Below are positions 2,611 through 63,199 of a stretch of 64,000 nt of DNA, piece after piece. The stretch comes from Phallusia mammillata (Eukaryota), in assembly GCA_965637545.1 (NCBI GenBank), contig OZ281496.1:21886001-21950000 (forward strand), in the 5' to 3' direction. Every line of letters starts with the position of its first letter. The stretch's first letter is position 1. The notes beneath the pieces were generated by a model that did not search any database, was not told the origin of the DNA, and saw only the letters and a list, made by a program, of their open reading frames with translations. A program made the translations under genes and the position numbers.

Positions 2611-5600
2611 TCAGTGCAAAAACACGCCCACAAGTAAAGCTGGAAGCATCACCAGGACACCGATATTGGATCGCATGTTGCTAAAAGCACCTAAAAAATA
2701 AAGATCATTTCTTTAATTCACGTGTGTGTGACATAAGCGTCTTGGGCAATAAGTCGTAACATTACTTCATAGAAACGGCAAAAAGCAAAAATGTCAATCC
2801 AATTCTTAAGAAACGATTTAAAAACAACTTTAGTTCCACTTACCACCTGGTGCTGGAAATGTCAACCCAGTAACTGTAAAACACAGAAAATAGACGTCGT
2901 GTCAAACGATATACAGATAATATGGATGAATATGGGAATGTTTCTTACTGTCGTAAATCCATGAATAAACCTCAACGATCTCTGTAAAGTAGTCCGGTCC
3001 TTGGCCGCATGTCACTTTCCCAAAACTACTGATTCCATACTGGTACCAAGTCTGGTCTCCACGTTCGCAAACCAGAGGTCCGCCCCCGTCACCCTATACA
3101 ACCAACCCAAAGGCTTGATTTTGACTTTAAACAACGGAAATCATACAATGTTGCCTGCGGTTTGCTGTGGGCGAATCGGGGTTTGTTGCGTCCAACATAT
3201 AACACTATACAAACTTGAAAAAGAGTTCTTTTCTCTTTCAAAAAAAAGTTTTTTTCTAAAGTTATGTTGCTTTTGCGTTTTGTTTTAAAAAAGGCGACAC
3301 AATTGTAATGGAACAATAAAATTGGACTGTTTTGTAAAAACAGATAAGGGGCATAAATCGTTTCTTTTAATAACAGAAATATATATAAAAAATATAAAAA
3401 ATATAAAAAATATACTCAAAGATGACATTACACTTACAGAAATATATATTTCGTCTTAATAAACAGGCATCGTTAGTTTCTTATTCATATAGATTTATAT
3501 TTATGTATTTAAGAAACGATTTATGCTTATTATCTGTTTTTATAAAACAGTCCAATATAAAACTGATCAGAAGCAAGAATCTTTCTTTTATACATTGTAT
3601 TGTCTGCAGGAGGCGTTACATAGCAAAACTGTTTCAGCTAATGGAACAATATCGAAATAGCGGATAAAGGTTATCAGCAAATATTTGCGTCCCTATTCAA
3701 TTCGGTGTTCAAGGTTGCTAAGGCTAAAGTTGCATTATTGTGTGTAAATTGAGTTGCTAAAGGTAATCCTCTTACATCACATGTTGACTTTCCTGAAGCA
3801 GTGGCACACATTACAGATTGAGGCATCGTGCTTCCCATATGGTTGCTACAGTAACTGTCTCTTTGAACTTCTAGTTGTGCTTGTCGCAGACTGGTGGATA
3901 AATCATTGCTCGCTGCAACACAACTGAGCAATGTAGTTGTAGACCGCAGGATGTTTGCGAATACGAAATGATGACGTTTGTATGGGACTAAGCTCTTAAA
4001 TACACATCAAACTAGGAAGGAATTTGTTATTTTGATACGCATGCAAGAAATATAATCAAACATCCACCCATATTCTTCCTAGTAGCTTCTGGTTAAAAGA
4101 TGTCAAGTTTAAATGTGATAGTCGGTAATTGACAAATGACCTGCACTTACTGCTAGATATGTGGCCCCATCCAGTGGCGTAGCATTTCGTTCCGGGTTTA
4201 ACATTATGACTTTGACTTGATGGTAGACATACTGGTGCAATGTTGTCAGTAAACGTGATGCTATTTGTCAAGTATAGGAGACCAATATCATAGCCATCCT
4301 GACCATTACCACTGAAAAAGTGAGTATGTTTATAAGCACTTTCTTGTAAACACATTTTTTTGACATATTCTCACGTTGCTGCATGGTGCTTGTATTGATG
4401 TAATACTGTAATTGTTTGTTGTCCAGGTTCTATTGTGTTTTCTCCACTAATCTTTCCCACTGCTACCTCAATACTGCGAAATATTTTAAACAAATTTTTA
4501 GAAATTCGTTGTTGCTCCGAGATGCAACAAACTATTTATTGTAAATTTATTTTCTTACGTGTCACTTGTTTCGAAACAAGTTGCAGCGGTTAGTATCCAT
4601 CTGTCAGATAGAATTGTTCCACCACAGAACGTGTAAATTACGCCAAATGGACGTGTGGCTCGAACCATGGCTTGCCAAGGCCATTCTCCTCTCTGTGACG
4701 CTGTTCCACCAGCAATTCTTGAAGGCTAAATATATATATTAAGTATATGTATCGTTTTCTTGAAAGAACACTTAGAATTTTGTTCTTGCTTCAATACTAG
4801 ATTGACTAAATACCCTAATTTAACCAGGTTTATAAAGGCGAAGCAAAAGTGGCCTAATACAAAAATTTGTTAACCCAGTTGTTGAGCTAAGGGGCAGTAT
4901 TCAACCGAGAGTGTGAATTGTATGCTGTAATCAGATGACAAAATCTACAATAGGGAAAAGGAGGCATTATTTTACAACTTGATCTTGAAGCCAATTTGTG
5001 AATACATGAGAAATAAAAAACGCTTTAGTGCGGCCTCTCAAACAATGTTACTTACCAATGAATTTTCGTTGGTCCGCTTTCCACAAACAATTTCTCCTAA
5101 ACAATTTTTTGTTAGGGATATTGTTTTTCTTTTTTCAAAATATTGCATGTTTTTATTGAAATTGCCAAAATGCTACTTACTACATGCCGTAAACTGACTG
5201 GACCATCCATACTCCCGGCATGTAATTGTTGATGTTCCACTCAATTGAAAGCCAGGATCACAAGTATACGACACCTGTTCGTTCAATTGATATTTGTCTT
5301 TATCCGGGTTGATTTTTCCGTTTGGGGGAACAATGGGTCTGGAGCACACCGGATCTATTAAAACAACTCGAAATAATGTCGCTTCTTTATAGTCAGGTCT
5401 AAAAGTTTTGCAGAACGACATAGTATGTTTATTTGCAACTTTTACACCGTTTTAAATGACTTTTACAGTTTTCCTATTCGATATTACCTTTGCAACGCTG
5501 ACAGCGCCTAATCACATTGAGTAGACTCCGAAAATGTGGTTTGGACTGAAATTTGTTTAAAATTTGAACGATTTGTGTAACTTTTAACACCAACACCACT

Positions 5601-8600
5601 GATAGTTAATAGGATACAACAACGTGGTTCTACAAAAACGCGAAAATGTCTGTTGGTAATGCATCTACTCTCTTTAAACAGGGGTGCCCGCGGGCAAAAC
5701 GTTTTTTTAGAATCAGAACACAAATATACGGGATTTAAGGACATTGTGAGATTTTGTTGCGTCAGCACCATGTACACTTCCTTTTTTACCGGTGAATAAG
5801 GTTCCATGGAAAGCTTTTGCGTTAAGTGGTAGGTCGCCAAAACCCCAAAACGTAATCCAAACTATGGCGTTACATACGCAACACAATTTGTAAAAACAGC
5901 CGCGGGCCACGTGAAATGCCGCCGGGGCCGCATTTGGCCCGCGGGCCGCACTTTGGACACCCCTGCTTTAAAGTCATTAATTGGTACTGTAAACATGGGC
6001 GTCCGCAGGAAAAAATACAGGGGAGGGCAATACTATCGTCACATCGCCGTTCGATAAACGGTATTTCAGAACAAAAATCATCTGACAGTGATACTCATTC
6101 TTGCCAATCCCAATGTAGCAAAGTAGTGCAATAAACAGAATATTAACCATCACTGACGTATGTGGTAGATTGGCAAATACTTTTAACAGAAGTAGGACTT
6201 ACATACACAAACCTTATCAGATGTAGGCTAACAACAGACAAAGTGAAGCCTTCACTTCACTGTGAAGGTATCACATAATGACTGTTTTACACATCTATCA
6301 ATGACGTAATAATATGCTTGTTAGCGAGCTATTGTTAAGTAATAATGTTCGATTCATTTAATCTGTTGTAAAACCTCATCCTGTTCTGTTACAGTTACAG
6401 CTTGTATTCGGTGCGTTTAACAGGGTGGAGACCCACGACGTCTTCGGTTTACGTCCCAGGAAAACCGGCGGTTGCCGACCACTGCTGTAAAGGGTGCCCA
6501 AAATGCAGAAGTATGTAGTGCCTTTGTTCTGTGTACGTACTTGTTATAGCCGGGACATTTACACGGGTATTTGGTTATATCGCCGATTTAACGACTTTAT
6601 ATGAGTTGACAATGTAGTTTAAAAGTTTACAATGTATCTAGTTGACACGCAAATGTAGAAAAAAATCAGTCTTTATAAGACAGAAAATACGTGCACTTTG
6701 CTTACCTGGGTCTGGAAAAGTCAGTCCAGTGGCTGTAATAGAAGGAAAAAAAGTTACTCTTCATTGGTCCACTCTATTTGGAGGCATTATTACAATTTTT
6801 CTTACTGTCGTGAATCCATGAATAAACCTCAATGACATCTGTAAAGTAGTCTGGTCCGTAGCCGCATGTCGCCTTTCCGAAACTACTGATTCCATACTGA
6901 TACCAAGTCTGGTTTCCACGTTCACAAACCAAGGGGCCGCCGCCATCACCCTATGCAACAACGGCAGAAGTTTTTTTTTTATAATATTGCCATGTAAAAC
7001 TCTAACCCAAAACACCCGTGTTTTAAGTGTAACATATTGTTAGCTAGGTCAAGGGCGGGCAACCTACGGCCCATAAAACTTTCGAGCGACCCGTGACCGC
7101 ATTCTAACTGCTTTATTTATCTTGTCTGGGACCGCATTACAAATTCGTATTTTATTCTTCATCGGCCGAATGCCTTTTATGCGTAGTATCCTTCTTATAT
7201 ACCAAAGAGTTCTTTAACTAAACGCTGATAGTTATTACTAGGAAAGTAGAAATACGTATTGTTACGTACAAAAAACAAAACTATTGTGTGTGTGTGTGTG
7301 TGCTTTGGAACTGTGTAATAGAGTTGTGTTGAAGTTTATTGTGTTGCTCAATTGTTACTATCCTAAGTAACGCTGTCCAAGGTTAAAGTTTTAGCAAACA
7401 AGTTCTGTAGCTTATTTGATATGTGTACATATTCAAATCAAACAAATCTTTAAAGTTGAATTCGCCAATTCTTGATCGGTGATTGTATGAGGCTAGGTGC
7501 AAATGATTGACTTACTTCACATGTTGACTTTCCTGGGGCAGTCGCACATATCACACTGTCAGGCATTGTACTTTCCATTTGGCTTCTGCAGTAACTTTCG
7601 CTTTGAACTTCCATTTGTGCTTGTCGCAGGCTGGTCGATAATTCATCGCTACCTGTAAATAATGTTTTGAAATAGTGTTGTAATAAATAGAGTATTTTAA
7701 TATTGTGTTGATCAAACTGCGACGGTCGCTTTGTATCAGGTCATTGTGATTAATCTTTACCTTATATTTCAATTTTACTCATTGCTGAAACATTTTTTTG
7801 TCTTTACTAGCTGTTTCACTTGTAGATTTTTTGGCTTGTAGTTTAAAATAAGAAGGTGGTGGCAACGTTACTTTGATTTGTCAGGAATTAACTTTCAAAT
7901 CACTAAACAGAAAACAAATCACTTGCACTTACTACTTGATGTGTGGCCCCATCCAGTGGCGTAGCACTTTGTACCAGTGTCAACATTGTGGCTTTGACTT
8001 GATGGTAGACACACTGGCCCGATGTTGTCAGTAAACGTAATAGTACTCGTCAGGCGGAGAACTCCAACATCATAACCGTCCTCGATTGAGCCACTGGCAG
8101 AGATATTGTTTAAGAAGGCGAAAGGGCGCTTAAAGATTCTTTGTCTTTAAGTGCCTACTTGGTATTTTGTTAGGTTGTGTTATACTTTAAATTATACCGC
8201 AAAATTTTAATTAAAACCAAAAAAATACTTTTTACACGATTTTCATACCATTTTTTGGTGTTAGAAATGCTTTAGTTTCTAGATTCACTTTCATGAACTT
8301 CTCATTTACGCTTACGTGGCTAAATGATGTTTGTATTGCTCTGACACTGTAAAAATTTGTTGTCCAGGATCTACATTATTTTCTCCGTATATCTTTCCGA
8401 CCGTCACTCGAATGCTGTAAGGAAATTAACAAATCATTAGTGCTTATCCAAGAGTGAAATAAGTAAACCTGGTTAAAAAAGAAAAATATTTTCCTTGCCT
8501 ATCACTTGTTTGAAAACAGATAGCAGCTGTCAGTATCCATTTATCCGAAAGAATTGTTCCTCCACAGAATGTGTAGAACAAACCATTTGGACGAGTGGCA

Positions 8601-9186
8601 CGAATCATGGCTTGCCAAGGCCATTCACCTCGTTGTGATGGTGTTCCACCGGCAATCCTTGAAGGCTATATAGATAGCGCGTTCATTGTTAGTATATATT
8701 TGTTTCAGTCTCTGTTCTTTAGTGGGAGCTCTATACTGTTAGGGATGGTCAGATTACAGTTTTTTTGTAAAACACAGGGCGATAAATGAATTTCTCCCAC
8801 TTTCAAGAGGCTTGCTTTACTGAAGATAAGCTAAACAGTGCATGGCCACATTATTTACGCTATAATTAGACGAGCCAAAGTAGATAATAATTTACTTAAA
8901 TGATATGATAACTTACTAACGAATTTTCGTTAACCCGTTTTCCACAGTTTTCAATGGTTTCTCCTGAACAAAAAAATAATAAATTTGTAACCGCAATTGT
9001 TCTTCGAGTAATAAATATGCTATGTGGGATTTGTAACACCCACTTTGAAATAAATTTGTGTAAGTATTACACACAATAGTTAATTTGTAAATTAAACACA
9101 ATAATGGAAGTCAAAATCAGTTTTGCCTTACCAGATATACAGGAGGCGACGCATAAAATGAAGGTCAGAAGGCGTATTGTTGACAT
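2611..9186 (-). CDS. G2: GPI-anchored two-domain serine pseudoprotease, SP-PSP-CCP-PSP-GPI (623 aa if spliced as one gene)
   Basis: Exons: 9132-9186 (SP), 8917-8963, 8499-8665 (PSRIAGG..TAAIC, GC donor), 8316-8414, 7933-8093, 7516-7652, 6806-6950 (GDGGGP), 6706-6732 linker, 5181-5354 (CCP), 5056-5096, 4559-4725 (TAATC), 4375-4473, 4151-4311, 3776-3912, 2949-3093 (GDGGGP), 2844-2873, 2611-2690 (hydrophobic tail ..NIGVLVMLPALLVGVFLH*). Total 1872 nt, frame open. It could instead be two genes (see finding at 6105). Confidence 0.8.
5679..5965. mobile_element. hAT-type MITE
   Basis: Termini CAGGGGTG..CACCCCTG; CTTTAAA on both flanks (imperfect 8-bp TSD). Confidence 0.7.
7285..7302. repeat. (TG)n microsatellite
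   Basis: Directly visible TG run in a G2 intron. Confidence 0.8.
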
Positions 9187-10284
9187 TTTTGTATCACTGG
9201 TCACTTAAAAAACAAAATACAAACTTTTTTGCAAAAGAAATATATATATAGTTTCTTTGTTCAAAATGATATTTTATCCACAAATGTAAATAAAAAACAT
9301 TTGAGACCGATATGGTCTAATATAGGCTACTCTTCTAACCATTTTTATAACGCTTACAAAATTGTTTTTTTTACCTTTTTTAAAAAAAAACTCTTATCAA
9401 CCGTTTTTTAAGGCGCCTGTTCAAAACAGACAATTAATTGCAAGATCTAAGCGATTGTCGACCCTTGCAAGCCTTTGTTAAACTCGACTAACAGCTTGAC
9501 ACAAACCTATACTTGTCTTTGTTATCCGTGCGGCACAAAGTTAAGTTTTAAATTAAGCCGTTGGCAGTTCATGTGTATAAATATTTATTGGTTGACGAAA
9601 CACTGCTTTCACTCTGACAATGTGTACTTTAAGGTTATGTTTTTTATGTACAGCAAACATCCTGGGTTGACAAGGTATATGTGTTGCATAAATAGGCAAA
9701 AAAGACACTGTTTGCGCTTGAAAGTTGTACAGGTACAAATTGAACGAACGTTTCCATGCTCTATTTTGGAGCTTGACACGCGAGGTCATTTTTTCATGAC
9801 GTGCCAAACGTTAAGCGGGTTTATATTCAAGTTGTGAACATATTTTTTACTGTTACACCGCTTGTTTTATTTGGTTGTTATGCAATAGTTTTAAAACCAG
9901 CCTACTTTCGCAAATCTGTCTACTTTCTAATTACATTTGTGAGCAGCTGGCAAAATCCACCAATACTCACAAAAGACCCCTTTAATATATCTGCACTAGG
10001 CAGTGTACTCGAGTCATAGTGAACAAATATTGGCTTAATTGGTGAAACCGGGTTTCAAATTACCGGCTTCGAATAGTTTTGTGTGTTTTAGTCTCCGATG
10101 CATAACGAGGTGAAACTCTTGATTAGTGTACTGTACACAAATGTAGTGTACTCTCTGGTGCAGCCTATAGTGATCTTTCATACCGCTTATGGCACAAATA
10201 TCAAACTGTCCTGTAGCTGTGATTAATGTTTAAGAGCCACTGTAATGACAAAACGGGATATTAATTTTTTTTGTATTTTTTGCT

Positions 10285-11640: not shown

Positions 11641-14596
11641 TCAGTGCAGAAAGATCCCCATAAATTGCGCTGCTACCATTATCAGGACACCATTGTTTTG
11701 CAAGCACCTGAAAAATAATGATCATCTCTTTAAATTCTGTGCAATCACTTATCTCTTGTCCCCATCTCAAAGCTCTGGTTTTTTAACTGCCCAAATCTGT
11801 TTGTGCATTTCGCATTTATTGCGTGAAAAGAAACCTAGGATTTTTATGAACACTGTTAAGGATCTTTAAAATTTAAAGCACATCGTGGCATAAGTTATGT
11901 GGAAACACTGACATAAACAGGTGACTGAACATACTTTGAGATGGGCTACATAAAACACAGCACGATAAAACTGCTTACAGACAAAACTGGTTAATGACTT
12001 TCCAGATTATTGCATATGCATTTAATTGCAAAGAAATCGTTAATCCCATACCGTAGTCTAGTAAAATCGTCATCGCATATCGCTTATATTAAAAGTTTGA
12101 ACGAAATATGCGATTTTGCATTGCCAGGGAAGTGCGAATGAGCACTTCTTTTAACAACGCAAAGTCCGTCTAACAGCGTAAAAACGCTTGGTAAGTGGTT
12201 GGTTATGTGATTCACCAGTTTATGCTTCAGAAATATATTTCTCTTACTTACCACTTGGGGCAGGAAAAGTCAAACCAGTCACTGTAAAAGACAAAATATT
12301 TACTTTGTATCAAAATATTTTTAGATAATATGGATATGTTTCTTACCATCGTGGATCCATGAATAAACCTCAATGACATCTGTAAAGTAGTCCGGTCCTT
12401 TGCCGCATAAAGTAGTCCGGTCCTTTGCCGCATGTCTCTATTGTAAAACTAATGATTCCATACTGATACCAAGTCTGATTTCCACGTTCACAAACCAACG
12501 GCCCACCGCCGTCACCCTATATAACAATCGAAAAGTTTGTTTTCGGCTTGCAACGACTCAAAATTACCTTAAGACATGTAATAACCCGCAAAACAGCGAA
12601 ATCAAGCACTTTTACCAAGCAAATAAGAGTTTGTTGCGTCTACAATAAAACGCCTTGCAAATATAGTGAAATTGCTTGCTTTGCGAAAGAAAAACACTAG
12701 AGCAAGCAAGCCGGAAATAATTAGGCAGCGTTAAAACGGTTTCAGGCACAAAATGTGACGAACTTATTCGATTAGATCTATTCTAAGGTAACAGTGCTGA
12801 ATTTGCCTGATTGTGTGTAAATTAAGTTGCTAAAGGTAATTCACTTACCACACATATATCGACTTTCCTGAAGCAGTGGCACACATCACACTTTCAGGCA
12901 TCGTGCTTGCCAATCGGTTGCGACAATAACTGTCGCTTTGAACTTCTAGTTGTGCTTGTCGCAAACTGGGCGAATAATCATCGGTCGCTGCAACACAATT
13001 AGACACACATGCATGTAACTGCAGGTGGCATGATGTTAGTGTAAACGCTGGCTAACTTTGTAAATATTAAACACGTCTCAATTTGTGTATTTAAAGCTAC
13101 ACAAGGGACAAAAGTTTGCCAATAAAAACAACATATTATCGAAAATAATAGTTAGTTGTAAACAAATCATTTGCTCTTACTACTTGATGGGTGGCCCCAT
13201 CCAGTGGCGTAGCACATGGTTCCGGTTTCAACATTGTGACTTTGAATTGATGGTAGACATACTGGTCCGACGTTGTCATTAAACGTGATGCTATTTTTAA
13301 GTAAAGAAGACCAACGTCATAGCCATCTTGCCACGAGCCACTGTATATAATGAGAATGTAAAAAGGTTGTTTTTTGTTTACACATTTTCATGACATAGGC
13401 TCACGTGGCTGCATAGTGCCAGTATTGATTTAACACTTCAAATTTTTGCTGTCCAGGATCTATTGTATTTTTTCCATAGATCTTTCCCACCGTCACTTCG
13501 ATGCTGCCACATGTTAAAAAGCAAAATTCATGTAATTTGTGTTTGCTCCGAGATGCAATATATGTTGTACATTTAGTTTTCTTACGTATCACTCAATTGA
13601 AAACAAGATGCAGCTGTTAAAATCCATCTGTCCGAAAGAATTGTTTCCCCACAGAATATGTAAATTACGCCAAGTGGGTGATTAGCGTGAACCATGGCTT
13701 GCCAAGGCCATTCACCGCGTTGTGACGCTGTTCCACCAGCAATTCTTGAAGGCTGAATATACAACACTTCTCACAACATTTAGGTTTTTGTTCTTGCTTT
13801 AAGTTTGCTGACTACCCCAATTTGCCCAGGTTTATATCGGCGATGCAAAATATCCTTAATATAAAAGTCTGTTATTCGTGGCCCAACTCAGTTGCGGAGC
13901 TAAAATGAGGATTATACTGTGTTTCACCGGCTATTCGCAAAGACTAAACAAATAGTACCTTAATTGCTATTAAATTTTGCCTCGCTGGATGATCAAAGTA
14001 TGTTTTTGCGTGTTTGTTAAAACGTAGGGCATTTGTCAATTTCTCGTACTTTGCATAAGTCGAGGTATAAGAACATGTTTATCTCGTTGCATAACTAACG
14101 ATAAGCTAAACAGTGTTGGACAACATTGTTTACCCCGAAACCAGGCTGGATTAAAGTAGATGATAGTTTATGTCCTAAGTTTAATTGCCAAGTGTTGTAC
14201 AAAAGTAACGAATTTGTAAAAAATATGTAACTATCTTTTCCAAAGTATGTTAATATCTTAATGTGTATCATCAACGTTTAAGTTTATTCTATGCAAATAA
14301 AACATTGATACTTACTAACGAACTTTCTTTGACTCGTTTCCCACAGTTTTCAATGGTTTGCATATACATATGTATATATTTTTGCCTATGTTCCACGAAG
14401 GAGTATAAATGTGTAATGCAGGCATATAATGCTTACTTTCGAAATAGATTGGTAGAAACTACAAGCAATATTCCATTCGGATTTTAAATAAAATCATTCG
14501 GATTTTAAAAACAATTAAATAAAAAAACAGTTTTAACTTACCAGATATACAAGAGGCGGCAAATAAAATATAGACCAGATGGGGTATTGTAACCAT
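11641..14596 (-). pseudogene. G3: single-domain SP-PSP-GPI pseudogene
   Basis: Exons: 14542-14596 (SP); about 14316-14360 (AG acceptor lost); 13586-13752 (TAASC); 13405-13503; 13181-13340 (160 vs 161 nt, frameshift); 12849-12987 (139 vs 137 nt); 12347-12516 (25-nt tandem duplication 12384-12433); 12252-12281; 11641-11707 (67 vs 80 nt). Confidence 0.85.
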
Positions 14597-15412
14597 TTTT
14601 GTTACACTTGTCATTTAAAGAACAAAATTTCTGAATTTCTGTTGCAAAACATATACATATGTTTTTCTTTGTTTAATTTGACTTTTTATTATCAACAGAT
14701 CCCAAGTCAAAAACATTTAACGCTGACATGGTCTAATATGCTTTTCTAACCTTTCCTCATAACACTTCTAATGGCGTCTTTCACAATCCGGATTGAAAAA
14801 TTGTTATGAACTGTTTTTAAGGAAGTTCAGTGATAATATGATTAAAGAAAAAACAAGTCCAATGGCAACATCTTGGGAAATCTCGACATTTACAAATCTA
14901 TTAAACTCGACTAACTGCTTCACACCAACCTATCTCTGTCTTTGTAACTTATTACCGAACCCTATACCTACACCGTATACCAGGAAAAGTGTAATTAGGT
15001 CATGGTAGGTAAATATTGGCTTAATTGGTGAGACTAATCGACTCCGAAAAGTTTTATGTTGATTAGCCACTGATGCGTGACGGAGTGACATTCTCGTTTT
15101 ATCGACACAAATCGTATACTTCCTGCAGCGCCCAACTGTGATATTTCATATTGCTTATTGTACAAATACCGAACTGTCGTGCGGTTGTGTTTATCAGCTA
15201 CTACTGTGATTTACGGATAAAACAGGTTGTTGATAAATGGTTCGAGTCTTGTGACCACAAATAGCCTTCTTTTTTGGTTTATTATGCGCCTTAGAGACCA
15301 ATGTATGTGTATATTCTTGCTTGATAAACAAAAAAAAACACCATAAAATAACACTTAATTTTGAAAGTATATTATGCACATAGTATTTCAAGCCATATTC
15401 CATTTCGCATGA

Positions 15413-24400: not shown

Positions 24401-24512
24401 CGGTCAAAAAAGTTTGAGAACCGCTGCATTAAAAGTATAGGTATGAAATTTTAATCTTACCTACTAAAACTGTTGTTGAGAAAACGACAAGCCAGCTCCA
24501 TGTATTGTACAT
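15413..24512 (-). CDS. G4: three-domain poly-pseudoprotease, SP-PSP-CCP-PSP-2xCCP-PSP-EGF-GPI (1046 aa)
   Basis: Exons: 24461-24512, 23729-23775, 23415-23578 (TSAGC), 23026-23121, 22791-22960, 22576-22730, 22355-22499 (GDSGGP), 22263-22292, 21699-21875 (CCP), 21415-21455, 20815-20978 (TAAGC), 20211-20303, 19967-20136, 19757-19911, 19531-19675 (GDGGGP), 19437-19466, 18977-19162 and 18324-18500 (CCP), 18060-18100, 17620-17783 (TGADC), 17463-17555, 17038-17192, 16610-16770, 15934-16078 (GDWGGP), 15645-15674, 15413-15567 (EGF plus hydrophobic tail). Total 3141 nt, open, all GT-AG. Confidence 0.85.
23830..24426. mobile_element. hAT (Buster-like) MITE
   Basis: TIR CAGTGGTTCTCAAA / TTTGAGAACCGCTG; exact 8-bp TSD CATTAAAA. 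Confidence 0.9.
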
Positions 24513-27012: not shown

Positions 27013-27021
27013 CCAACTACA

Positions 27022-52326: not shown

Positions 52327-55300
52327 TTACAACAGCAAATTTAACACAAGAAAGGTCGTCAAGATTAAGAGTATAAACGGAATCCGCATGGGTTCGCTGT
52401 TGGAGCATGTGTAGCTGCCGATGGTGTTGGTGCATCGTTGGTTGTTCGGACAAGGGTTTGGTGTTTGTTCGCATTCGTTGACATCTGTGTGTAAAAAAGA
52501 AAAAATGAGTAAAACAATGTTTACTATAAATATATGTACATATAAACACTTGTAGAACACATTTGATTAATCGACTAAAGAAAAGACTCAATTAATCGTA
52601 TTTGCAACAACATAGTGTATACATCCAATACCAGGAACCAAAAATATGAGTTGCTTTAACATGTAAATACTTTTGACAATGCATATTGTTTCATAGGTTT
52701 CCCAAATTCTTGCACAAAAGGTTGTTCAAACCACGTTAATAGAAACAGTTTTTAAATTTGTAAACTTACCAGTGAATGAATCGAAGTCAATGCTTGAAGC
52801 TGAAAGAAAATATGATCATTAACTCACTTATGTTATCATTCCCTAACCTTATTCCTATCAGGTTTAACTACAAATTAAATTTGCAGTTTTCGTTAACTAG
52901 TTTTTTTTTTGCGCATAGATTCCTTGTGTCCAGACAATAATACAGTAGATAGGTTGTTTTAAAATAAAAAAAGTTTTGTTACTTGTCTTAATCCACCAAA
53001 ATAACTCAGCGACGTCTGTAAAGAAAGTTGATCCTTGTCCACAAACACTGCTTCCAAAACTCCTTACACCGTATTGGTACCATGTATTGTTTCCCACGTT
53101 ACACATCAATGGTCCACCAAAATCGCCCTGTAAAATAAATCCTATTAAATAGACACTAAAATTGTGCCGTAACGTGTCATTTGTGATTTAAGACATACTT
53201 TAAACCAGGGGTACACAGTCATTTCGCTGACGGCCGAATTGCAGATTCTTATCTCACCAACGGCCCCAATTTCTTACTTGTTTTTGTTATAAAATTGCTG
53301 ATGTAAAAATAGGTTTATATCATGTATATACCATCTAATGCAGGGGTTCCCAACCTTTTTACGATCCCGTACCACTTGGACGCTCTGCACTGCCACACGT
53401 ACCACCATAGAGAAAATGTGTTCTATAGTGCTCTATGCCACTTCTTGCAGAACAACTAATTTGTTCGAATTATATTTCATTCAACACTAGCTTAAGCTAC
53501 AAAACAGTAGATGATATCTATCAAGAGCAATCATTTGACATAATTAACGCCCACTGTGCCACAGCGTTGTTCGGCTTTTCATAGCAACTATGCTTTTTGT
53601 TGAGAATTGACATGACCTGTATTTTGAAGATCGTAATGATACGAAACAACAGGAATAGTTACGTAACAATGACAATAGGCCTGGGGAATGTTTTTTTTGC
53701 AAACAAAACCAGATAAACAAAATATAAAGTTGCAAATCGAGGTTTTTGTGAACAGAACAGAAGCTACTCGCGTACCACCTGAAAACCCTTCGCGTACCAC
53801 TAGTGGTACGCGTACCACAGGTTGGGAACCCCTGATCTAATGGCACCTGAAAAGCCCAGAGGACTTCTAACTAGATGCTATAAACAGTCGCGCGATCAGT
53901 CTTTACCGCTATGCTAAACATGTTCACGGCCGCACAAACTTGTCTCCGCGGCCCCAGGTTGTGCACCTCTGCGTGAAATTGTAACTTAATAAGAGCAGGA
54001 ACTTGGCCTAATGGTCCGACACGCCTGACCCATATACAGACATAAAAACTTTGATCGGAATTCGTCCCCGGAAGCGTCCTAGGTTCGAACCCCGTGAAAA
54101 AATGTAAGCTTGACTAAAAGTGTTTAAAGTTAAGTTCACATATGCATTAACAAATGAAAAATTTTGAAAATAAAACCTTAAAAATAATTTCCATACCACA
54201 CAAGTATCTTTGTTGTTTGCTTGAGCACACATAATATTTGAGGGCATAGGAGCTCCTTGATTCACACCCTGAAAATTAAAATACTCTGCTGCGCAAAATA
54301 GTTTGCTTTTAATCTGAAGCTCAACTTGTTGAAGTGTGTGGGAGAACGGGCCACCATCTACAAAAGTACAATTTATTTAAACAACGCATAAATGATAAAA
54401 CTTAACACAAGTTTCTGTCTTACCCTGATTTTTTCCCCATCCAGCAAAGTAGCATTTTGTTTCGGGAGGTAGCTTATAACTTATTCCTGGTGGTAGACAT
54501 ACGGGACGCACGCGTTCATTAAAAGTTATGCTTGAACTCAGCTTTAAAAGACCAATATTATTTCCCAACAAAGCAGATCTATGCAAAAAAAATGTAAAAA
54601 TAAATTAGAATAAACTCCAACCTATCATGCATTTAAATTCCTAGTAAAAAAGAATCGTTCTGTTGCTAATACTACGTAGAGTGTTAATAACTTTTTGGTC
54701 CTCTGTAACAAGAATTGATCCCAAACTTTATGTTCAAGTGACTAAAATGCCATTGATTGCGCACACTTTTATTATTGTTTTTGTCTTGTTTGTTACATAA
54801 TAAATTGCCTTTTAATCATTCCAACGCGAGGTGATCTTACGAAAGTAAACATTTAATTATCCAGTATGTTGTTGTGGGAATACACTTCCACAAGAAATAA
54901 ATTACCTTGGTGTTGTTACTTACAGCTTTTGTTTGGCTTAGCTACAAATATAGTTTCAGATAAATATATTTAGCTTGCGCTGAGTGCTCGAGAAAATTGC
55001 AAAGGGATTGTTATGGCAAAGTGTGATAGACAAATTTAAATAGTTACCTGAAACTGGTGAGATAAAGTTTATTGTGAACAGCAAGTATTTGTCCTTTTGA
55101 GTCAGAATCCACGATCTCAAGTGAGCCGACATAAACTGACAGCCTAAATTCATTAGTATTAATTTTGCTACAAACTGCTAATGGTTATTATTTACGCACT
55201 TGGCAGTTTCTTGGATACAGCTGGCTGCAGTCATTACCCACTTATCTGAGATTATAGTTCCTCCGCATAAAAATGTGTATTGTGTTTGGTAATATCCACT

Positions 55301-58300
55301 TGTAGTTTTAATGACCTGTGCCATCCATGGCCATGCACCTTCTACTGATGTTGTTCCGCCCTGGATTCTTGCGTTCTGTTAACAAGCGTTAAAATATGTT
55401 TTAGAATAGACTTTTTCTGCTTTTGCTCTCTTAACTAAATATAAATTATACCACTGCGTATGAACTTGAACGTGTTCCACAGCGAGGCGGTATTTCTGCA
55501 ATGAAAAGTACAATTGAAAACCTTTAATAGTTGCGTTTCTTTGAACTAAGAGAATCACCACTGTTACTAAGTTAAGTTTATTAAAATTTTCAAAATAACG
55601 TATTTTAGGACTTAACTATGAAACGGCAACAGTACCGGAGAGGGGACTTGAAATAATAAGAAATATCCTAGTAAACGAATTAACACTCATAAACACTGCT
55701 TTCCAAATTGTGCTGAAATAAAACTAAACATTTTGCTTTTCCGAAAAAACGCGTCTAAAACTGGGCTGGCGTCTCGGAAAATAGTACGGATGTAATAAAA
55801 TAAAAATATCTTAAAAACACGAACAAAGAAAGTTAAATTTGGTAACTTGACAATTGAAAACTATATACTCCACTGAAATTTATTCTATACAAGACTGCTA
55901 GCAAGCCTGATATATGAAGTATAAGAAAGCTACAAACTAAAAGGAATGTTAAAACTTACCGCATGAAGGTACATTAGGAGACCATCCATTACTTTCACAT
56001 GTTGGTTGTGATGTGTTTCCAAACAGCACCAACCCGTTTGAACATGCAATTTGGATTTTTTCATTGTACGCGTAACTTTCTTTGAGTGGAGAAATTGTTT
56101 CGTTTTTGTGCACGACTGGTTGTTGGCAAGTTATCGCTGCAATCATATAAGAAACTGTATTTCAAAGTATTTAACACACCGTCAGTCAATTTTTGCTTCA
56201 GAACTATCTGTGTAATTTCTACATATGCCCCATGACTACTTTTGCACAGATATGTCACATAAGACTATTTAAATTTTACTTTAGGGATAAAATAAATTGC
56301 CTCTGTTTTCTCTATTAGTAAAACTATAAATTGAAAACAATGAAAAGTGATTGATGTTAGTACTTTTGATTCATAAATTAAACCCTTTGTTATAACGGTG
56401 TAAACCATTTGTAACATATTGGTGTTACCTTCACAAGTTGGGTCCTTGCCAGACCACGCTCCATCTCCAGTGTAATTGGATATAAGACATGTTAGGCTTT
56501 TCTGACCCACTACCTTGTAACCACTGTAACAGCTGAAAGTGACCGTACTGTTCAAGATGTATGTGTTCTGATACGGCGATATAGATCCACGCAATGGATT
56601 AAATGGCCTCGAGCAACTGATGACTAAACATGAAAAGACTATCATTGGGACACTACAAAAAAACGCTTATGTAGACAAATAAAATGTAAGGGCAAATAGC
56701 AGCAAAACATGCATCAGTTTGGGCATGTGATATGTCCATTAAAATCCTCGTACATTTTTTTAGGTAATGACAAAAGTGGATTTGTGAAAATAAACTTTTG
56801 CCAGGAAACAGCATCTCCTTATACAGTGGTATTTTTTGTCGGCCGGTCGATGTGCAGGTTTAATGTCTGCTTTTGCAGCGAATATAATTAAAAATTGGTT
56901 AGTGTTATTTCTAAACGTCGAATTAATTTAACCCTTCGACTTTAGCAACTTGAAAAAATGTTCAAATAGAAGGTCGAACTAAAAAACGAACTGTTCCTGT
57001 TGTTATCAATGCTTTTGTTGCTTTTAAGAACTTTGTGTTTTATATTACATTATTATCAACAATTAGTAACAAAATTCCTGGTGTTCTGACACCAGTTTTA
57101 TGATCTCGTTCCAATTTACCTCGACAATCTGAAAAAGTACTTGACCAGCCACCCGGCCACTTGCATGTTAGGTTTCTTAAATATGCGGGGGTTATGTAAT
57201 GGCCCTTGTTGCATGCCATTGAAACGTTTGCTCCGAGTGAGTATTCTTCTTGGATTGGCCAGAAATATCCGTTTCGTGGTCCGGTCGGCGAGCCACAAGT
57301 AAAAACTATGAAAAAAATATGACTGTGAATACTTTTTTTGATTGGTTAAGTTTATTGTGGTCAGATATTTTGGTGGTGTCTTTAAGATTGCTGTTGTACA
57401 CTAAATTCTTGTCCAAAACTTTGCTACTATTGTTGATTTGTTTCTGATGTTGAAACGACCTTTGAGTTCAACAGCCCACTAGAAGTTTTTAACTGTAAAT
57501 AGTTACGTTCCAAGTTTAAACTTTGAAAGCGTAGTTTAAAGCCGAAATGACGTCATGTTTTTAATGATGACATCATAAAAAAAATGCTTTTAAATTTGTT
57601 TTAAATTTTGTACACAACAACATTTCCAGAGAAAGTTATGGGCTATCTCTTATCACATTTTCTAGAAAAGTCATAAAGTACCACAAACGCAGAAATTTAC
57701 GAAAAAGAATACTGCAGTATAGGTTAAATGCATATGAATATATGATTTAGTTGCACGGTGGATGATTTACACAACGTCTAGTCTTACGAAGGTTTCGTTT
57801 TTGTAAGTTTCCAAAATGAACTAGGTGTTGGAATTCGCAATACAATGCTTTACCTTTGCAAGTTGGTGGAGTTTCTGACCATCCATTTAGGGTACAAGTG
57901 AGTCGAATTGGTCCATCAAGCTTGTAGCCGTAATTGCAATAGAAATCGACATATGTATTTAAGCCCGTGTATGTACTGCTTAAGCGTCCATTGCTCGGTG
58001 GGCTGAGAGCAGAACATCTAAACCCTGGAATAAACAGTTACGGTAACTTTAAAAGCTAGAAACTAGGTAGTTTGTTTTGTAAGAAAGTTTTAAAGGGGGC
58101 AAAACAGTAAAGTAGCGATTGGATACCAGATACAACGAAAGTAGATAGTTAAAAAATATAATGGAGCTGTAAACCGCAGCTAACAGTGTTTGTATGGTTC
58201 TAAAGTAGACGGTGGTGGGATTCAGACGGTTCGCACGGGTTCTATAGTACCGTCTTAAGAAATCTTATGAGATCAGCAAACCGGTGAGCATTACTGGTTA

Positions 58301-61300
58301 CTGTCATTGGACTTTTTCTAACAGAACTGGCTGAAAAATATGAGTTTTGTTATAGAACCGGCTGACAATAAGTTTGAATACCACCACTGACGTAGAGGTA
58401 TAACTAAAGACTAAAATCGTGACAAGTTGGACCAAAAAGCTTCTTTAACTTTGTGGAAAGATAAAAAAGAAGAGACATTATTCAACTCAAAGTAATAAAC
58501 TTACTTGGGCATGATGGGGCGCTATGTGACCAAATCGCTTTTCCGGCGGATAAAACGCAAGTGCTTGATGAACTTCCTTGCAGCGTGTATCCGGTGTCGC
58601 ATGCGAAAGTGACTACAGCATTCACCACGTATCCTCTTTGGTAGTTTGGTGTTATTGTACCATAACTTAAATATAGTCTCGAGCATTTAATAACTGTAAA
58701 AATACAGAAAAATCAACAGGTTTAACCCAGATGCAAAAAAGCTTCAGAATAACACGAATATATGCGTGTTTTAATTTATTATGTCTGTTTGAAAAGGTCT
58801 ATAATAATAAACAACAAACGCCCAAATGAAAATCCATTTTTAAATGTAAAAAATATCTATTTAACACTTTTTTTGGAAAAGTTATTCAATTTGAAGGTAA
58901 ATTCCTACTGTTTGGTTGTTGAAAATGGAGTCCAGTTTCTGAAAAACAAAAAACGTGTAACAACTACACTGCCAGTCTTGCCGCTTCAAAGTAATTTACT
59001 AAAATTATCCTTAACTGTTTGTCTTCTTAGCCCTATACTCCTAGTCTAAACAATGAGTTAACAAAGATGCTTTTTGTGTACGCACTTGAGCTAATCCAAC
59101 TACAGACTTCTGGAATATTCGTGAAAAACGATGGACCGTCCCCACATTTTGAGCTTCCAAAGCTTCGTAAACCAAACTGGAACCATTTATCATCACCAAC
59201 GTTGCACAGTAATGGGCCACCGCTGTCACCCTAAACAATTAAACGCAATGGCGATGAAATGTTAAATTTGTTGTGGGTTATGGGACTTAAGAAAAACTTA
59301 AAGTAAAAGTCTATTTTTTGGAGGTCGCATGTAAAGTCAATTTGCCAGTAGTGTCGAAGTCTTACATTTTTAACTCTCGTTCAAATCCTTGCGATTATGT
59401 CTCCAATTCATCAGTTATGTCCTTCCTTATATAGCGAGTTTTAACACAAGCTGTTACGTAATTAATGGTTGATATTTTAAGCAAAATCTATTATGAAAAG
59501 TATAACATTTTGACAAATCTGTTATGAAAAGTATAACATTTTGAGCTATTCTTAACTTTCTACTATAATCTTACCCTACAAGTGTCCGTATTGTTGGTGT
59601 GGGCACATGTTAATGAATTAGGTAGACCAGAAAACGAAGCTCCTTGAAAAACTCGGTAGTTATTATAGCAGTATGTTGTAGGTTTGATCTCCAACTCTAC
59701 TTGCTGCAGATTATCCGACAAAGCAGTGGAGTTTTCTTGAAACAGTAAAAACGCAAAAGCCTACTTTAGAAGATAATGTAACCAGGGTGCCGTAATTTGA
59801 CCAGTAATTCTCAAACTGTGCGAAACATTTATTGTTGTAAGCATGACAACGCTAACAGCAAAAATAGACTTGATCAACGTAGTCCCGAGTTGTAAACGGG
59901 CCTGAAGCCGTTTAGACCTAAAGGTTTTATAGACATATACATGAAAGCCTTTTTGAGCATATGCATTAAAGCCTAAGGAAAGACAATAACAGACAGTTGG
60001 TCATGAAAAATGCGTTTAAGGCTGTTCAAAATTGGGTCAGGTCCAGCAAGTGGCTATTTAGGTAGCTAAATTTAATACTGACACAGATCGTAAAGTCGGA
60101 CCCAAGTCAAGCCCGTTAATTTGGAGAAACCTAAGCCCGAACCCGGCCCGAAAAGTCCTGGCCTTCTTACAACTCTGACGTAGACAGCGCAAAAACATCA
60201 TCATTCAGCAATACCAGAGTCACTCATCTCAACAAAGTTGCAAATTGATTTTATCCAACATTGTTTTTCTGTTGTTTTTAAGGCATACAAGGTGTAGGCT
60301 ACCCCGAAAATTTAGTTTGTACACCGTAGCCTATCTGTAGCTTAAAATATTGGGTTCAAGAGGGGTTTTTTCTGCTGAAAACAAATACAGTTTATGTCGA
60401 CCTTCAGATATGTCACGGAAAATGTACTAAATATGAATAAACTGTTACTGCCAGGCATAATATATCAACAATTTTTTAGCTATTCCAGCAGTCTTTATTA
60501 TAATATGCCGGTTTCGATGTCCCGTACGAGACACCTTCACCAGGGTAACCCAACAGGGAAGGGCTAAAAACTGCGGAAAGAGTTTAAAAATTGTTGATGT
60601 ACTAAATATAATTGCAATAAAACTGCATTTAATACTCGGGGAGTTCAACTTACTTTTAAGTCCCCAACCGGCAGTAATGCACTTTGACTCCGGTGGCATT
60701 TCGTATGATGATCTTCGTGGAATACATATGGGGCCGACAACATCATTAAAAGTAATTCTTGAAGTTAGTTCCAGCAGACCCGCGTCATTTCCCAATAAAA
60801 TACTCCTGCAAATTGAGTTAATTCGTTTAACGGATATTCTTGAAAACAATTTTAATGTTAGATTTTTATTTAATTTGTCAAGCAACTCAAAATTACTGAA
60901 ACCGTTATTCAAAAACTACTTTAAAAGTTTCTTACGTGTAACTTGTGTGTCTGTATTTTTCCTTTACTGACATAACCTGTTCTGTTGGAGAAGGTACAGA
61001 TAAAGTACTTCTACCAACATAAACCTTGAACCTGCAAGTTTTATTTACACGCATTAAGTGAATAAGTCCTAAAAACTACGAAACACGGTAAACATATAGT
61101 TGGACATTCTTAAACTGTTTCCGGCAATACATGCTAGCTGTGGTAATATAAACCCTTGTTGTATCGTCTAGAACAGGGGTTCTTAACCAGGGGTACACGC
61201 ACCCCCAAGGGGTGCGAGAACTGTTCCTAGGGGGTGCGGGGATGCTGAATCATTAAGGTTGGTTTGGTCTTTTCTATTTAAGCAATTACAGAAGGGGGAG

Positions 61301-63199
61301 CGAAAATTGGTTGGTGATTTGAAAGGGGTGCAGCAAGGAAAAAAGGTTAAGAACCACTGGTCTAGAATATCTGTCTTGTGCTTAATCATGGTCCATGTCA
61401 TGATAACATGTAACACGAAATCAGAAAAGGCCCCCATCTCGTGGTAAAACTATATTTATGAGGGGTAGTTTCATGTACATTATTTATTGTCGGAAAAATA
61501 ACTTTGATATAACATATGAGCAATGTGCGCTTTGGACGCAACAATTCTACCAATTTGCTATTGGGCAACTATACTCAAAAATAATCTGTAACCAAACTTA
61601 CACATCGACAAAATTGAAGCATTCAGCCCCGGTAAGAATCCATCTGTCTGATATTATACTTCCCCCACACACGAACGCCGTGCTGTTGTCGGCTTCAACT
61701 TTGGCAACAATTGCCATCCATGGCCATGTTCCGTTCTCCGCTGTCGTACCGCCGTAAATACGACCGGTCTAAACAATCATAAGTAACATCAAAGTCGTTT
61801 TCTAGAATGGTCTTGCGGTTGGACACAAAAAAGAACTAAACACTATCTATTATTAATTCATTATTACACGCTTTAAAATAAATTTTTCATTTGCATAACA
61901 TGCAACAGTTTTTTTTTTTTGTAAATTGTTACGTTTTTATTTTGGCACCATCCCATGACGTTATAACGCATTTATATATTGTTTCTCTGTAACGAATTGT
62001 CGAGGAGAGTGGCCCAACGCGGCTACGAAACCGTCAGGTGAAGTTGTTGTTGAGCGGTGGTTGTGTTGCGACCGTAAATCTGCGCTGCTTGCCCCTTTTA
62101 TCGTTTTACTCTTTCAATATTTTAATACAAATTAATTTGGGTAACAACAGAACCAAAAAAATGCGTTACATAGTTGCAAATTTACTTGTTGACTATTATT
62201 GCAAAGCATCAGAGTCTTACCGGTTTGCTTCTTGTTCTTGTCCATTGTTTACCACAGTCGGTTAACGCGGTGGCTGAAAAACAATTTTATGTCGTTGTTG
62301 TTGTAAACTATACAGATTATGTTTGCAACGTTTTATGCGTGCAATGTTTATTTCATAGTATCAACAAAAACATTATTCTTCAATTTGTCATTTTGCAAGC
62401 TTCATGCAAGAGTTTCGTTCACCACATTTTTCCATTTTTAAAAACTTTGGTAATTGCTTCCAAAAAGAATATATTCACAGGAATTGTAACGTAACGTAAC
62501 ACAAATATTGTCGTAATGCCAAACATATTAGTACATGTTCTAAACTCGAGTTTCGATGTGAAGTAGTTTTTATTGATTTGATCAAAATCGTGCGGAAAGT
62601 TACTATAGCTACGCTAAGCTATATAGTGAATGTTAGTATCGATACCCGTATAATCCAATAGCGAAATACTTTTACTTTTGTAACTTGTTAAATGCGAAAA
62701 TACATACACACAATAGAATATACAAACATAACACTCAACTTTACCCGGCCTTACTTGAACAAGTTGGAGTGACAGTACTCCACCCGCTATCGGTGCATGT
62801 TTTCGTTTTACTACCATGAAGTACGTATCTGTCTTCGCAAGTAAAAGTGATAACCGATCCCACAGAATAAGTTGATAGATCCGGGCTCACGGATCCACGA
62901 TATATCGTTGGTCGGTAACATGTTGAGTCTTTAAAAAGACAGTTCGTTAGTCCGCTTACGATGCGTTGGTGGAGATGTAGGTATATTGCATTAGTACAAT
63001 GCCAACCCTGTTTTATTAGGTCTACCTGTTTCAGAGGCTACTTAATGTTACCACTTTTTTGCGTGTCAGAACAGAACGTCATTAAAATCTAAATATAATG
63101 AGTTAAAAATATGTTTGTTTTTCTATGCTTACCTGCAAATTTCGCTAAAGCAATTAAACATAAACAAAGTCCAACATTGTGTTTCCATCCACTGTACAT
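52327..63199 (-). CDS. G9: SP-CCP-PSP-5xCCP-PSP-EGF-GPI poly-pseudoprotease (965 aa)
   Basis: Exons: 63133-63199, 62755-62928 (CCP), 62221-62273, 61602-61768 (TGAEC), 60936-61031, 60654-60805, 59575-59735, 59086-59230 (GDSGGP), 58505-58693, 57854-58024, 57120-57305, 56429-56623 and 55960-56136 (5 CCP), 55452-55495, 55200-55375 (TAASC), 55048-55143, 54424-54578, 54197-54357, 52983-53127 (GDFGGP), 52770-52799, 52327-52484 (EGF plus ..RIPFILLILTTFLVLNLLL*). Total 2898 nt, open. Confidence 0.88.
53206..53971. mobile_element. Older hAT-type MITE hosting a nested insertion
   Basis: Imperfect termini CAGGGGTACACAGTC / GGTTGTGCACCTCTG; TSD not recognisable. Confidence 0.55.
53341..53834. mobile_element. 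Nested hAT (Buster-like) MITE
   Basis: TIR CAGGGGTTCCCAACC; exact TSD ATCTAATG. Confidence 0.92.
53993..54102 (+). mobile_element. tRNA-derived SINE, intronic copy
   Basis: A-box TGGCCTAATGG (54004-54014), B-box GGTTCGAACCC (54082-54092), A tail; homologous to 36646-36770. Confidence 0.85.
58210..58389. mobile_element. hAT-type MITE
   Basis: Termini CGGTGGTGGGATTCA / TGAATACCACCACTG; TSD degenerate. Confidence 0.65.
59885..60177. mobile_element. hAT-type MITE, CAGAGTTG family
   Basis: CCGAGTTGTAAA..TTACAACTCTG; TSD ACGTAGTC / ACGTAGAC (7 of 8). Confidence 0.8.
61174..61359. mobile_element. hAT (Buster-like) MITE
   Basis: TIR CAGGGGTTCTTAACC / GGTTAAGAACCACTG; exact TSD GTCTAGAA. Confidence 0.92.

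Follow-up and report, generated by a model that had tools for sequence, protein, structure and literature searches.

What is a protease fold kept for once its chemistry has gone? The question is raised by a stretch of 64,000 nucleotides from the tunicate Phallusia mammillata, here called the window (C3:21886001-21950000 of a 240-Mb chromosome-scale assembly), in which a series of trypsin-like domains is encoded on one strand and none of them has the catalytic histidine. The window is AT-rich (GC 0.34-0.40) and has nearly no long open reading frames (ORFs), and a six-frame scan of it yields 13 T-x-A-x-C motifs in a trypsin context, all on the minus strand. The S1A (trypsin-like) domain is divided among five exons in each of these 13 copies. 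The locus is probably a lineage-specific tandem array of genes for secreted Sushi/EGF mosaic proteins, whose S1A pseudoprotease domains are maintained by selection and for which a binding activity armed by cleavage is proposed. Judged from their sequences, the domains most likely bind rather than cut. Intact ORFs, ratios of non-synonymous to synonymous divergence (dN/dS) below one, and invariant cysteines, Arg15 and Asp194 together mark them as maintained non-catalytic domains.

The array reaches beyond the low end of the window and, with 150 kb of flanking DNA examined, consists of 18 His-less domains over about 130 kb. As 18 related domains at one locus, all without the catalytic base and with an active sister gene adjoining, it forms a natural series and a compact system in which to ask what the protease fold is selected for after catalysis. 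It also enlarges the tunicate repertoire by a family, so far unannotated, of probable surface proteins.

Catalytic positions and constraint on the fold

The exon layout was obtained from exon-wise profile searches and from comparison with a canonical trypsin domain that this genome encodes in one exon. Exon A runs from Arg15-Ile16 through Cys58, exon B lies between A and C, exon C carries Asp102, exon D ends at Cys191 and exon E starts at Gly193. Profile, Pfam and PDB searches were run exon by exon, and the spliced joins were used for alignment, tree and dN/dS. The family assignment is illustrated by G9a (handles as in Table 1), which matches PF00089 (Trypsin) with exon A (positions 1-45, E = 3.5e-9), exon C (86-128, 1.8e-7) and exon E (178-220, 1.3e-7); two exons of G2a are also listed by a whole-genome PF00089 scan, and exon D alone has no Pfam match. 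The exons between the domains are matched by Sushi and EGF_CA. The span of 2949-61768 given in the first-pass annotation is exact, as both of its ends fall on splice sites, the donor that follows exon E of G2b (2949) and the acceptor of exon A in G9a (61768). Contamination or a bacterial origin was rejected in view of the GT-AG introns and the chromosome-scale 240-Mb animal assembly.

From low to high coordinate the motifs around position 57 read TAATC, TAAIC, TAASC, TGADC, TAAGC, TSAGC, TGADC, TSAGC, TGADC, TTANC, TAASC, TAASC and TGAEC; followed from G9a down to G2b, the residue itself is E, S, S, N, D, G, D, G, G, D, S, I and T. None of the 13 domains in the window therefore has His57, nor has any of the 18 copies in the array, where Ala is found in addition below the low end of the window and Val in a relic exon (TVVVC). 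Eight states occur in the 16 His-less domains scored, or nine if the Val57 relic exon is counted. The loss is not a matter of chance, as in the genome's next most similar arrays TAAHC is kept by 19 of the 20 exon-A copies that were sampled, versus none of 18 here. At position 195, Gly is found in six copies (G8a, G6a, G4b, G3, G2a and G2b), Trp in five (G8b, G7, G6b, G4c and the G5 fragment), Ser in two of the 14 (G9a and G4a) and Phe in one (G9b). Asp102 is present in 11 of 13 domains, with Asn in G9b and Tyr in G4c; that of G3 is readable from the DNA in the frame-shifted part of exon C. These results reproduce the first-pass annotation on all three residues: the missing His57 with its seven replacements (T, I, S, D, G, N and E), the tally of 6 Gly, 5 Trp, 2 Ser and 1 Phe over 14 copies, and the 11 of 13 retained Asp102 with its two exceptions. 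Its count of 13 readable domains holds for the motifs, but only 11 domains are intact, since G3 is frameshifted and exon D of G7 is split. Its premise was that normal S1A catalysis needs both His57 and Ser195; with His57 gone from every surviving copy and Ser195 replaced on the stem of the clade, ordinary charge-relay catalysis is not possible.

The 11 intact domains (G9a, G9b, G8a, G8b, G6a, G6b, G4a, G4b, G4c, G2a and G2b) have stop-free spliced ORFs of 236-244 amino acids and identical intron phases (0/2/2/1/0/1), and their introns are GT-AG apart from a single GC donor in intron 1 of G2a. This donor, at 8494-8499, reads GCAAGG where the paralogues all have GT; it may belong to a rare GC-AG intron or be a defect in splicing. 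Across the 11 domains 42 alignment columns are invariant, among them nine cysteines, Arg15, Gly18, Gly19, Gly140, Gly142, Asp194, Gly196, Gly197, Leu199, Trp237 and Ile238. The nine Cys columns are also shared with the canonical paralogue G10 and correspond to the predicted S1A set 42-58, 136-201, 168-182 and 191-220 plus Cys122, the pairing being assigned by sequence only. The G-D-x-G-G-P-L scaffold is invariant or nearly so.

Pairwise dN/dS between close His-less paralogues is 0.12-0.42, with all 95% bootstrap intervals below 1, and a parsimony counting estimate gives an omega of about 0.38 over the clade. Synonymous divergence of the closest pairs is 0.23-0.92, and the copies are thus old. 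The earlier statement that the fold stays constrained is borne out by the dN/dS values, by the invariance of the nine cysteines, Arg15 and Asp194, and by the near-invariant scaffold. The scaffold also shows where constraint was lifted. Nine of its positions (T54, A56, C58, G193, D194 and G196-L199) have accumulated 2 non-synonymous versus 48 synonymous changes, whereas positions 57 and 195 together have 18 versus 8 (Fisher p = 1.8e-9), a contrast which pinpoints the release of constraint on the two catalytic side chains.

Modules around the domains and a proposed mode of action

Gene architecture was read from the conservation of ORF pieces across paralogues, from Pfam and hydropathy, and from a base-level reading of the 3′ end of G6. 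First exons carry a Met and a hydrophobic core, and ahead of the first domain there is a linker that contains Cys-Gly. The domains are separated by one to five Sushi exons, and such exons stand directly upstream of G9a, G9b, G8b, G6b, G4b, G4c and G2b. What precedes the domains is thus either Sushi exons or a short Cys-Gly linker, and no clip domain was found among 19 different exons scanned against Pfam, a set that covers part of the upstream ORFs. After the last domain of G9, G8, G7, G6, G4 and of two single-domain genes below the window (FL1 and FL2), a short linker exon is followed by an EGF_CA exon whose ORF ends in a hydrophobic tail of 15-19 amino acids with the stop directly after it. 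Both the signal-peptide-like start and the tail are visible in the hydropathy, and the layout of the tail resembles that of a glycosylphosphatidylinositol (GPI)-anchor signal. The genes G0-G3 have no EGF tail, and their products appear to be secreted, with one or two domains.

The following mechanism is proposed. Each protein would begin with a signal peptide and carry one to three trypsin-fold domains separated by Sushi/CCP modules, followed in most genes by a calcium-binding EGF module and a C-terminal GPI-signal-like hydrophobic tail. Ser195 was replaced on the stem of the clade, and the general base His57 is missing from every surviving copy. Selection has nonetheless held on to the fold and all its disulfide cysteines, to the site of zymogen cleavage (Arg15-Ile16) and to Asp194, with which the new N-terminus would form a salt bridge. 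Also preserved are the backbone motif of the oxyanion hole and, in the majority of copies, the S1-pocket residue Asp189. An active trypsin-like protease would cut at Arg15-Ile16, whereupon the domain would snap into a protease-like conformation and bind a partner (some ligand, protease, inhibitor or surface) without cutting it. Being tethered, the protein would then have the role of an adaptor, a decoy or a recognition molecule, much as arthropod serine protease homologues (SPHs), HGF and haptoglobin have. That a proteolytic switch is still kept is suggested by the invariance of the Arg15-Ile16 site (Arg15 in all, with Ile or Val at position 16 except for Ser in G8b) and of Asp194.

By their residues, the dead sites fall into at least three old, internally conserved types. 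The first has small residues at 57 and 195 and is found in the G0-G3 genes; the second combines Gly or Ser57 with Gly or Ser195 and is that of the first domains of the larger genes; the third combines Asp or Asn57 with Trp195 (in G9b, Ser57 with Phe195) and is that of the last, membrane-proximal domains. In multi-domain genes the first domains carry a small residue at 195 (Gly or Ser) and the last ones an aromatic residue (Trp or Phe). Within the Asp57/Trp195 subclade neither site changes over about 1.3 synonymous changes per site, where neutrality would predict about 3.5 changes at position 57 and about 3.9 at position 195 (P = 0.03 and 0.02). This argues that the Asp57 and Trp195 replacements are now themselves selected, and much of the seven-residue variety thus consists of old, fixed subtypes and not of ongoing diversification. 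The array is likewise suited to asking if a bulky Trp in place of the nucleophile amounts to a new functional solution. A more specific but rather unlikely account is that the array encodes a cleavage-armed, GPI-tethered recognition family in which one chain combines two dead-site kinds fixed long ago, small-residue sites in the distal domains and Asp57/Trp195 sites in the membrane-proximal one, acting together as a non-catalytic sensor or adaptor for protease cascades, for self/non-self recognition or for gamete recognition, and that the newly selected Trp195 might plug or reshape the entrance to the oxyanion hole and S1 pocket.

Ancestry of the domains and competing explanations

In a maximum-likelihood tree from which positions 57 and 195 were removed and the pseudogene G3 left out, the His-less domains form a single clade (support 98/96), with canonical G10 as its sister (96/88) and the canonical domains of ascidians outside. 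One group within the clade is G0-G2 (100/99), to which G3 apparently belongs though outside the tree. The second unites the first-domain type (G8a, G6a, G4a and the middle domain G4b) with the last-domain type (G9b, G8b, G7, G6b, G4c, FL1 and FL2), which G9a joins weakly. Because domains group by their position across genes, the types are older than whole-gene duplication.

Codon parsimony places Gly (GGG) or Trp (TGG), and not Ser, at position 195 of the clade root; a single step separates TGG from the TCG of G10. Loss of the nucleophile thus came before the clade radiated. For the ancestor of the G8a/G4a/G6a/G4b group parsimony gives Gly195, and AGC and AGT are each one step from a Gly GGY codon. 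The Ser195 of G4a (AGT) and of G9a (AGC) would thus most simply be secondary. The codon class of Ser195 (AGY versus TCN) was considered as proof of a regained serine and rejected, since canonical proteases of the genome use both classes, so that the argument for regained Ser rests on the tree. At position 57 the root is ambiguous, with H, N, D, T, A or P at equal cost and two independent losses equal to one in steps; a single early loss of His57 nonetheless appears likely. The first-pass claim that catalysis was lost early is accordingly upheld for Ser195 but left ambiguous by codon parsimony for His57. Parsimony is weak at this divergence, and gene conversion within a tandem array could distort the tree.

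It has to be asked whether the former cleft has instead become a positively selected ligand-binding surface, the domains being a diversifying recognition repertoire of immune, allorecognition or gamete-recognition receptors. The eight states at position 57 and the tandem arrangement of predicted surface-tethered proteins with Sushi modules would suit such a repertoire, as would positions 60 and 99, which flank the S2 site and come 4th and 11th when the 184 scored columns are ordered by non-synonymous changes, position 60 lying above background omega (p = 0.016). The most variable columns cluster in stretches corresponding to the 37-, 170s- and 220-loops that ring the cleft; however, active proteases are most variable in the same loops, and loop variability is thus unspecific. 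In per-site counts over the 184 columns no site exceeds the neutral expectation, and positions 57 and 195 rank only 26th and 43rd and behave as neutral drift would predict, and not as under positive selection. Conservation is seen at residue 189 (Asp, but Ser in the G0-G3 type), Gly193, Asp194, Ser214 and residue 215, and Asp57 and Trp195 are fixed in their own subclade. The suggestion in the first-pass annotation that the cleft has diversified is weakly supported: positions 57 and 195 are freed relative to the scaffold, but these are not the most variable sites. As for cleft residues being more variable than other positions, the 14 cleft positions show a marginal excess over all other columns (one-sided p = 0.06, with buried core columns in the comparison set), and the five conserved residues just named run counter to it. 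A diversifying repertoire is on this evidence improbable.

Several points weigh against selectively maintained, non-catalytic domains and have to be set beside the evidence for them. The cleft set was assigned by motif anchoring to the canonical neighbour. No orthologue was found in another species, so that the selection estimates come from paralogues only, and gene conversion could distort dN/dS as well as the tree. A word search with one exon E returned no candidate protein fragments, a result uninformative on full-length proteins. G9a and G4a carry Ser195 together with Asp102, and residual or unusual chemistry is conceivable there. Damage is also present, in the frameshifts of G3, the G5 fragment with its in-frame stop, the insertion in exon D of G7 and the GC donor of G2a.

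The penultimate of these points bears on the idea that some domains have kept or regained catalysis by an unconventional mechanism, the candidates being G9a (Ser195, Glu57, Asp102) and G4a (Ser195, Asp102). In both, Ser195 sits in an intact G-D-S-G-G-P with Asp102, Gly193 and Asp194, and both domains are intact and under purifying selection. Neither has a His at or beside position 57, the Gly57 of G4a offers no side chain to serve as a base, and with Gly or Trp195 reconstructed for the clade root and Gly for the ancestor of the G8a/G4a/G6a/G4b group, the serine looks secondary and may be incidental, which leaves such catalysis quite unlikely. Least credible of all is a graveyard of pseudogenes decaying after one inactivating event, with the variety at 57 and 195 as neutral decay: the damage listed above and the relic exons at 1838-1948 and in the left flank would fit it, but 11 of the window's domains have retained full ORFs and every splice site although synonymous divergence amounts to 0.3-0.9 or more in the closest pairs, their dN/dS is far from neutral at 0.12-0.42, the cysteines and activation motif are invariant, and signal peptides, Sushi, EGF and tails are conserved among paralogues.

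The array, its neighbours and known systems

The S1A domains and the modules around them are collected in Table 1.

Table 1. Positions of S1A domains, accessory exons and fragments in the window and just beyond its high end
Feature	Position	Strand	Remarks
G9a dead S1A domain, 5 exons	59086-61768	-	Glu57 (GAA), Asp102, Ser195 (AGC); intact ORF 240 aa
G9b dead S1A domain	52983-55375	-	Ser57 (AGC), Asn102, Phe195 (TTT); intact
G8a dead S1A domain	47906-50103	-	Ser57 (TCG), Asp102, Gly195; intact
G8b dead S1A domain	43014-45016	-	Asn57, Asp102, Trp195; intact
G7 dead S1A domain	36087-38876	-	Asp57, Asp102, Trp195; exon D split by ~124-bp insertion, not a multiple of 3
G6a dead S1A domain	32362-33461	-	Gly57, Asp102, Gly195; intact
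G6b dead S1A domain	28539-30715	-	Asp57, Asp102, Trp195, Arg193; intact
G5 fragment, end of exon D and exon E	26475-27016	-	Trp195 (G-D-W-G-G-P), then in-frame TGA; in duplicate of G7 3′ region
G4a dead S1A domain	22355-23578	-	Gly57, Asp102, Ser195 (AGT); intact
G4b dead S1A domain	19531-20978	-	Gly57, Asp102, Gly195; intact
G4c dead S1A domain	15934-17783	-	Asp57, Tyr102, Trp195; intact
G3 dead S1A pseudogene	12347-13752	-	Ser57, Asp102, Gly195; frameshifts in exon C, end of exon D and exon E
G2a dead S1A domain	6806-8665	-	Ile57, Asp102, Gly195, Ser189; intact ORF; GC donor in intron 1
G2b dead S1A domain	2949-4725	-	Thr57, Asp102, Gly195, Ser189; intact
Relic partial exon A	1838-1948	-	T-V-V-V-C (Val57)
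G1 exon A, 5′ end	1-14	-	Ala57, Gly195; domain continues across window start into left flank
Sushi exon immediately upstream of G9a	62759-62920	-	
Five Sushi/CCP exons, G9a-G9b interval	55961-58685	-	58509-58685, 57858-58016, 57124-57297, 56433-56615, 55961-56128
Three Sushi exons, G8a-G8b interval	45441-46631	-	
Two Sushi exons, G6a-G6b interval	31359-32010	-	
G4 Sushi exons	18325-21867	-	Span includes G4b domain; 21700-21867 between G4a and G4b; 18981-19154 and 18325-18492 between G4b and G4c
Sushi exon, G2a-G2b interval	5182-5346	-	
G9 last exon	52330-52506	-	EGF_CA, hydrophobic tail, stop
G8 last exon	42350-42514	-	EGF_CA and hydrophobic C-terminal tail, TGA
G7 last exon	34591-34788	-	EGF_CA and hydrophobic tail, TAA
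G6 3′ end	28082-28357	-	Short linker exon; EGF_CA exon with 19-aa hydrophobic tail and TAG (GPI-signal-like); read base by base
G4 3′ end	15416-15687	-	Linker exon; EGF_CA exon with hydrophobic tail, TAG
G6 first coding exon	33607-33771	-	Met at 33762, signal-peptide-like hydrophobic core; Cys-Gly linker ORF 33602-33679 overlaps end
G4 first coding exon	24459-24521	-	Signal-peptide-like, Met at 24512
G2 first coding exon	9070-9204	-	Signal-peptide-like, Met at 9186
G3 paralogous first exon	14462-14614		
G1 paralogous first exon	775-942		
G10 canonical paralogue	73095-75365 (window-equivalent) = C3:21959095-21961365	-	
Sushi exon between G10 and G9a	67749-67919 (window-equivalent)		
EGF exon between G10 and G9a	66588-66749 (window-equivalent)		
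EGF_CA exon between G10 and G9a	65326-65439 (window-equivalent)		

The 3′ part of G7 and the non-coding DNA downstream of it (33600-36500) are almost identical to the G5 region (23700-27000), the ORF pieces matching in all frames, and this near-identity indicates a recent segmental duplication of about 3 kb. One short repeated element occurs both in exon D of G7 (about 36650-36770) and in the intron between exons D and E of G9b (53874-54113), its translated strings being similar at the two places; no tRNA was found by ARAGORN in 36400-37000, the region of the G7 insertion.

In the left flank the array continues with G1 (Ala57/Gly195), G0a (Ile57/Gly195), G0b (Thr57/Arg195) and a relic exon with Ala57. 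FL1 and FL2 lie farther down, at about 39 and 68 kb from the low end of the window, and each has Asp57/Trp195; the order in FL2 is Sushi, an Asp57/Asp102/Trp195 domain, linker, EGF_CA and hydrophobic tail, and it belongs to the same family and clade as the domains of the window, which contains the multi-domain genes and the remaining dead-site types. At the other side, about 11 kb past the high end, the canonical G10 has the same strand and exon layout together with TAAHC, Asp102 and GDSGGP, and could be an ancestor-like gene or even the activating protease. A genome-wide exon-A profile search found this type of exon at 76 bits or above only at C3:21.818-21.948 Mb, in 18 copies, followed by G10 and then by arrays on C2 and C4. 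The latter are more distant at full length, and their Ser195 codons are both AGY and TCG. Two departures from the canonical site were seen elsewhere in the genome: a separate dead trypsin-like domain at C4:5520000-5525300, with Tyr57 (T-S-A-Y-C) and Ala195 (G-D-A-G-G-P), and at C2:12392000-12398200 one copy of an otherwise canonical array with S-A-T-H-C and G-A-S-G-G-P, in which Asp194 is replaced by Ala and His57 and Ser195 are kept.

Enzymes that have lost catalysis and persist as binding proteins are a recurrent theme, of which the trypsin fold is the best-studied example. Dead S1A proteases are already well known (haptoglobin, HGF, azurocidin and insect SPHs), and the array is a new family of that kind; the basic phenomenon is not new, and the biological role is proposed from sequence. 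Against 1.84 billion protein representatives the exon-E profile found no close relative, and neither the family signature nor a Trp195 or Gly195 motif in context was present in the 43 examined of its 150 listed matches. The nearest named matches are canonical proteases of the ascidians Ciona savignyi and Clavelina lepadiformis. In the PDB, exon A matches factor XI, plasma kallikrein, acrosin and TMPRSS chains, and exon E matches TMPRSS13, chymotrypsin, enteropeptidase and heparin-binding protein. The literature, of which coverage was incomplete, gave no description of Sushi-SPH-EGF tunicate proteins, of G-D-W-G-G-P or of Trp195, nor were chains with up to three dead domains spaced by Sushi modules and ending in EGF_CA and a tail, or an 18-domain clade without His57, found described.

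Haptoglobin has a CCP module N-terminal to a trypsin-fold domain that is without His57 and Ser195, keeps Asp102 and acts by binding. The array is similar in that Sushi/CCP modules lie directly N-terminal to dead trypsin-fold domains, but it is not orthologous and differs in its replacement residues, in having several domains per chain, and in its EGF_CA module and hydrophobic tail. Descent from haptoglobin or from MASP/C1r is ruled against by the tree, in which the sister is canonical G10 and the next relatives are canonical ascidian proteases; no haptoglobin chain appears in the PDB among the best 60 matches of exon A or the 9 of exon E, and haemoglobin binding is not implied. In HGF and MSP, cleavage at the zymogen site is needed before the former active-site region of the dead protease domain binds the receptor. 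These factors provide a mechanistic model for the proposal made here, with the differences that they have kringles, not Sushi modules, and a single dead domain, and are soluble vertebrate factors.

Azurocidin carries Ser57 and Gly195. This pair is the one seen in G8a and G3, and azurocidin (heparin-binding protein; PDB 1a7s and 1fy1) is among the few PDB chains that match the exon-E profile; unlike the array, it is a single-domain mammalian granule protein of the elastase/PR3 lineage, without Sushi, EGF or anchor. It is an inactive S1A homologue (PMC7914634). Polyserases, ovochymases and a gar protein resemble the array in having several S1A domains per chain with some triad residues replaced. 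The gar protein (Lepisosteus oculatus XP_069044036), the best protein-library match, has 4066 amino acids and 14 tandem trypsin-like domains, several with Gln, Ser or Arg for His57, and is an unrelated case of a polyprotease inactivated serially and in part. In contrast to the array, whose domains are all dead, these multi-S1 chains combine active with dead domains and have spacers other than Sushi modules, and their sequence similarity is only generic.

The arthropod SPHs with clip domains, such as Manduca SPH1 and SPH2 and the Anopheles CLIPA proteins, share with the array a triad-deficient S1A fold that is secreted, retained by selection and often tandemly arranged. Non-catalytic SPHs do not function until they have been cut by proteolysis ahead of the protease-like domain (PMC6901238), and a G-D-G-G-G-P motif has been reported for those of the honey bee (PMC1761132). 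The array differs in its Sushi and EGF_CA partners, with no clip domain in the exons scanned, and in that most copies have both His57 and Ser195 replaced, with up to three dead domains in one chain. Its origin is independent of the arthropod proteins and lies within a clade of tunicate proteases.

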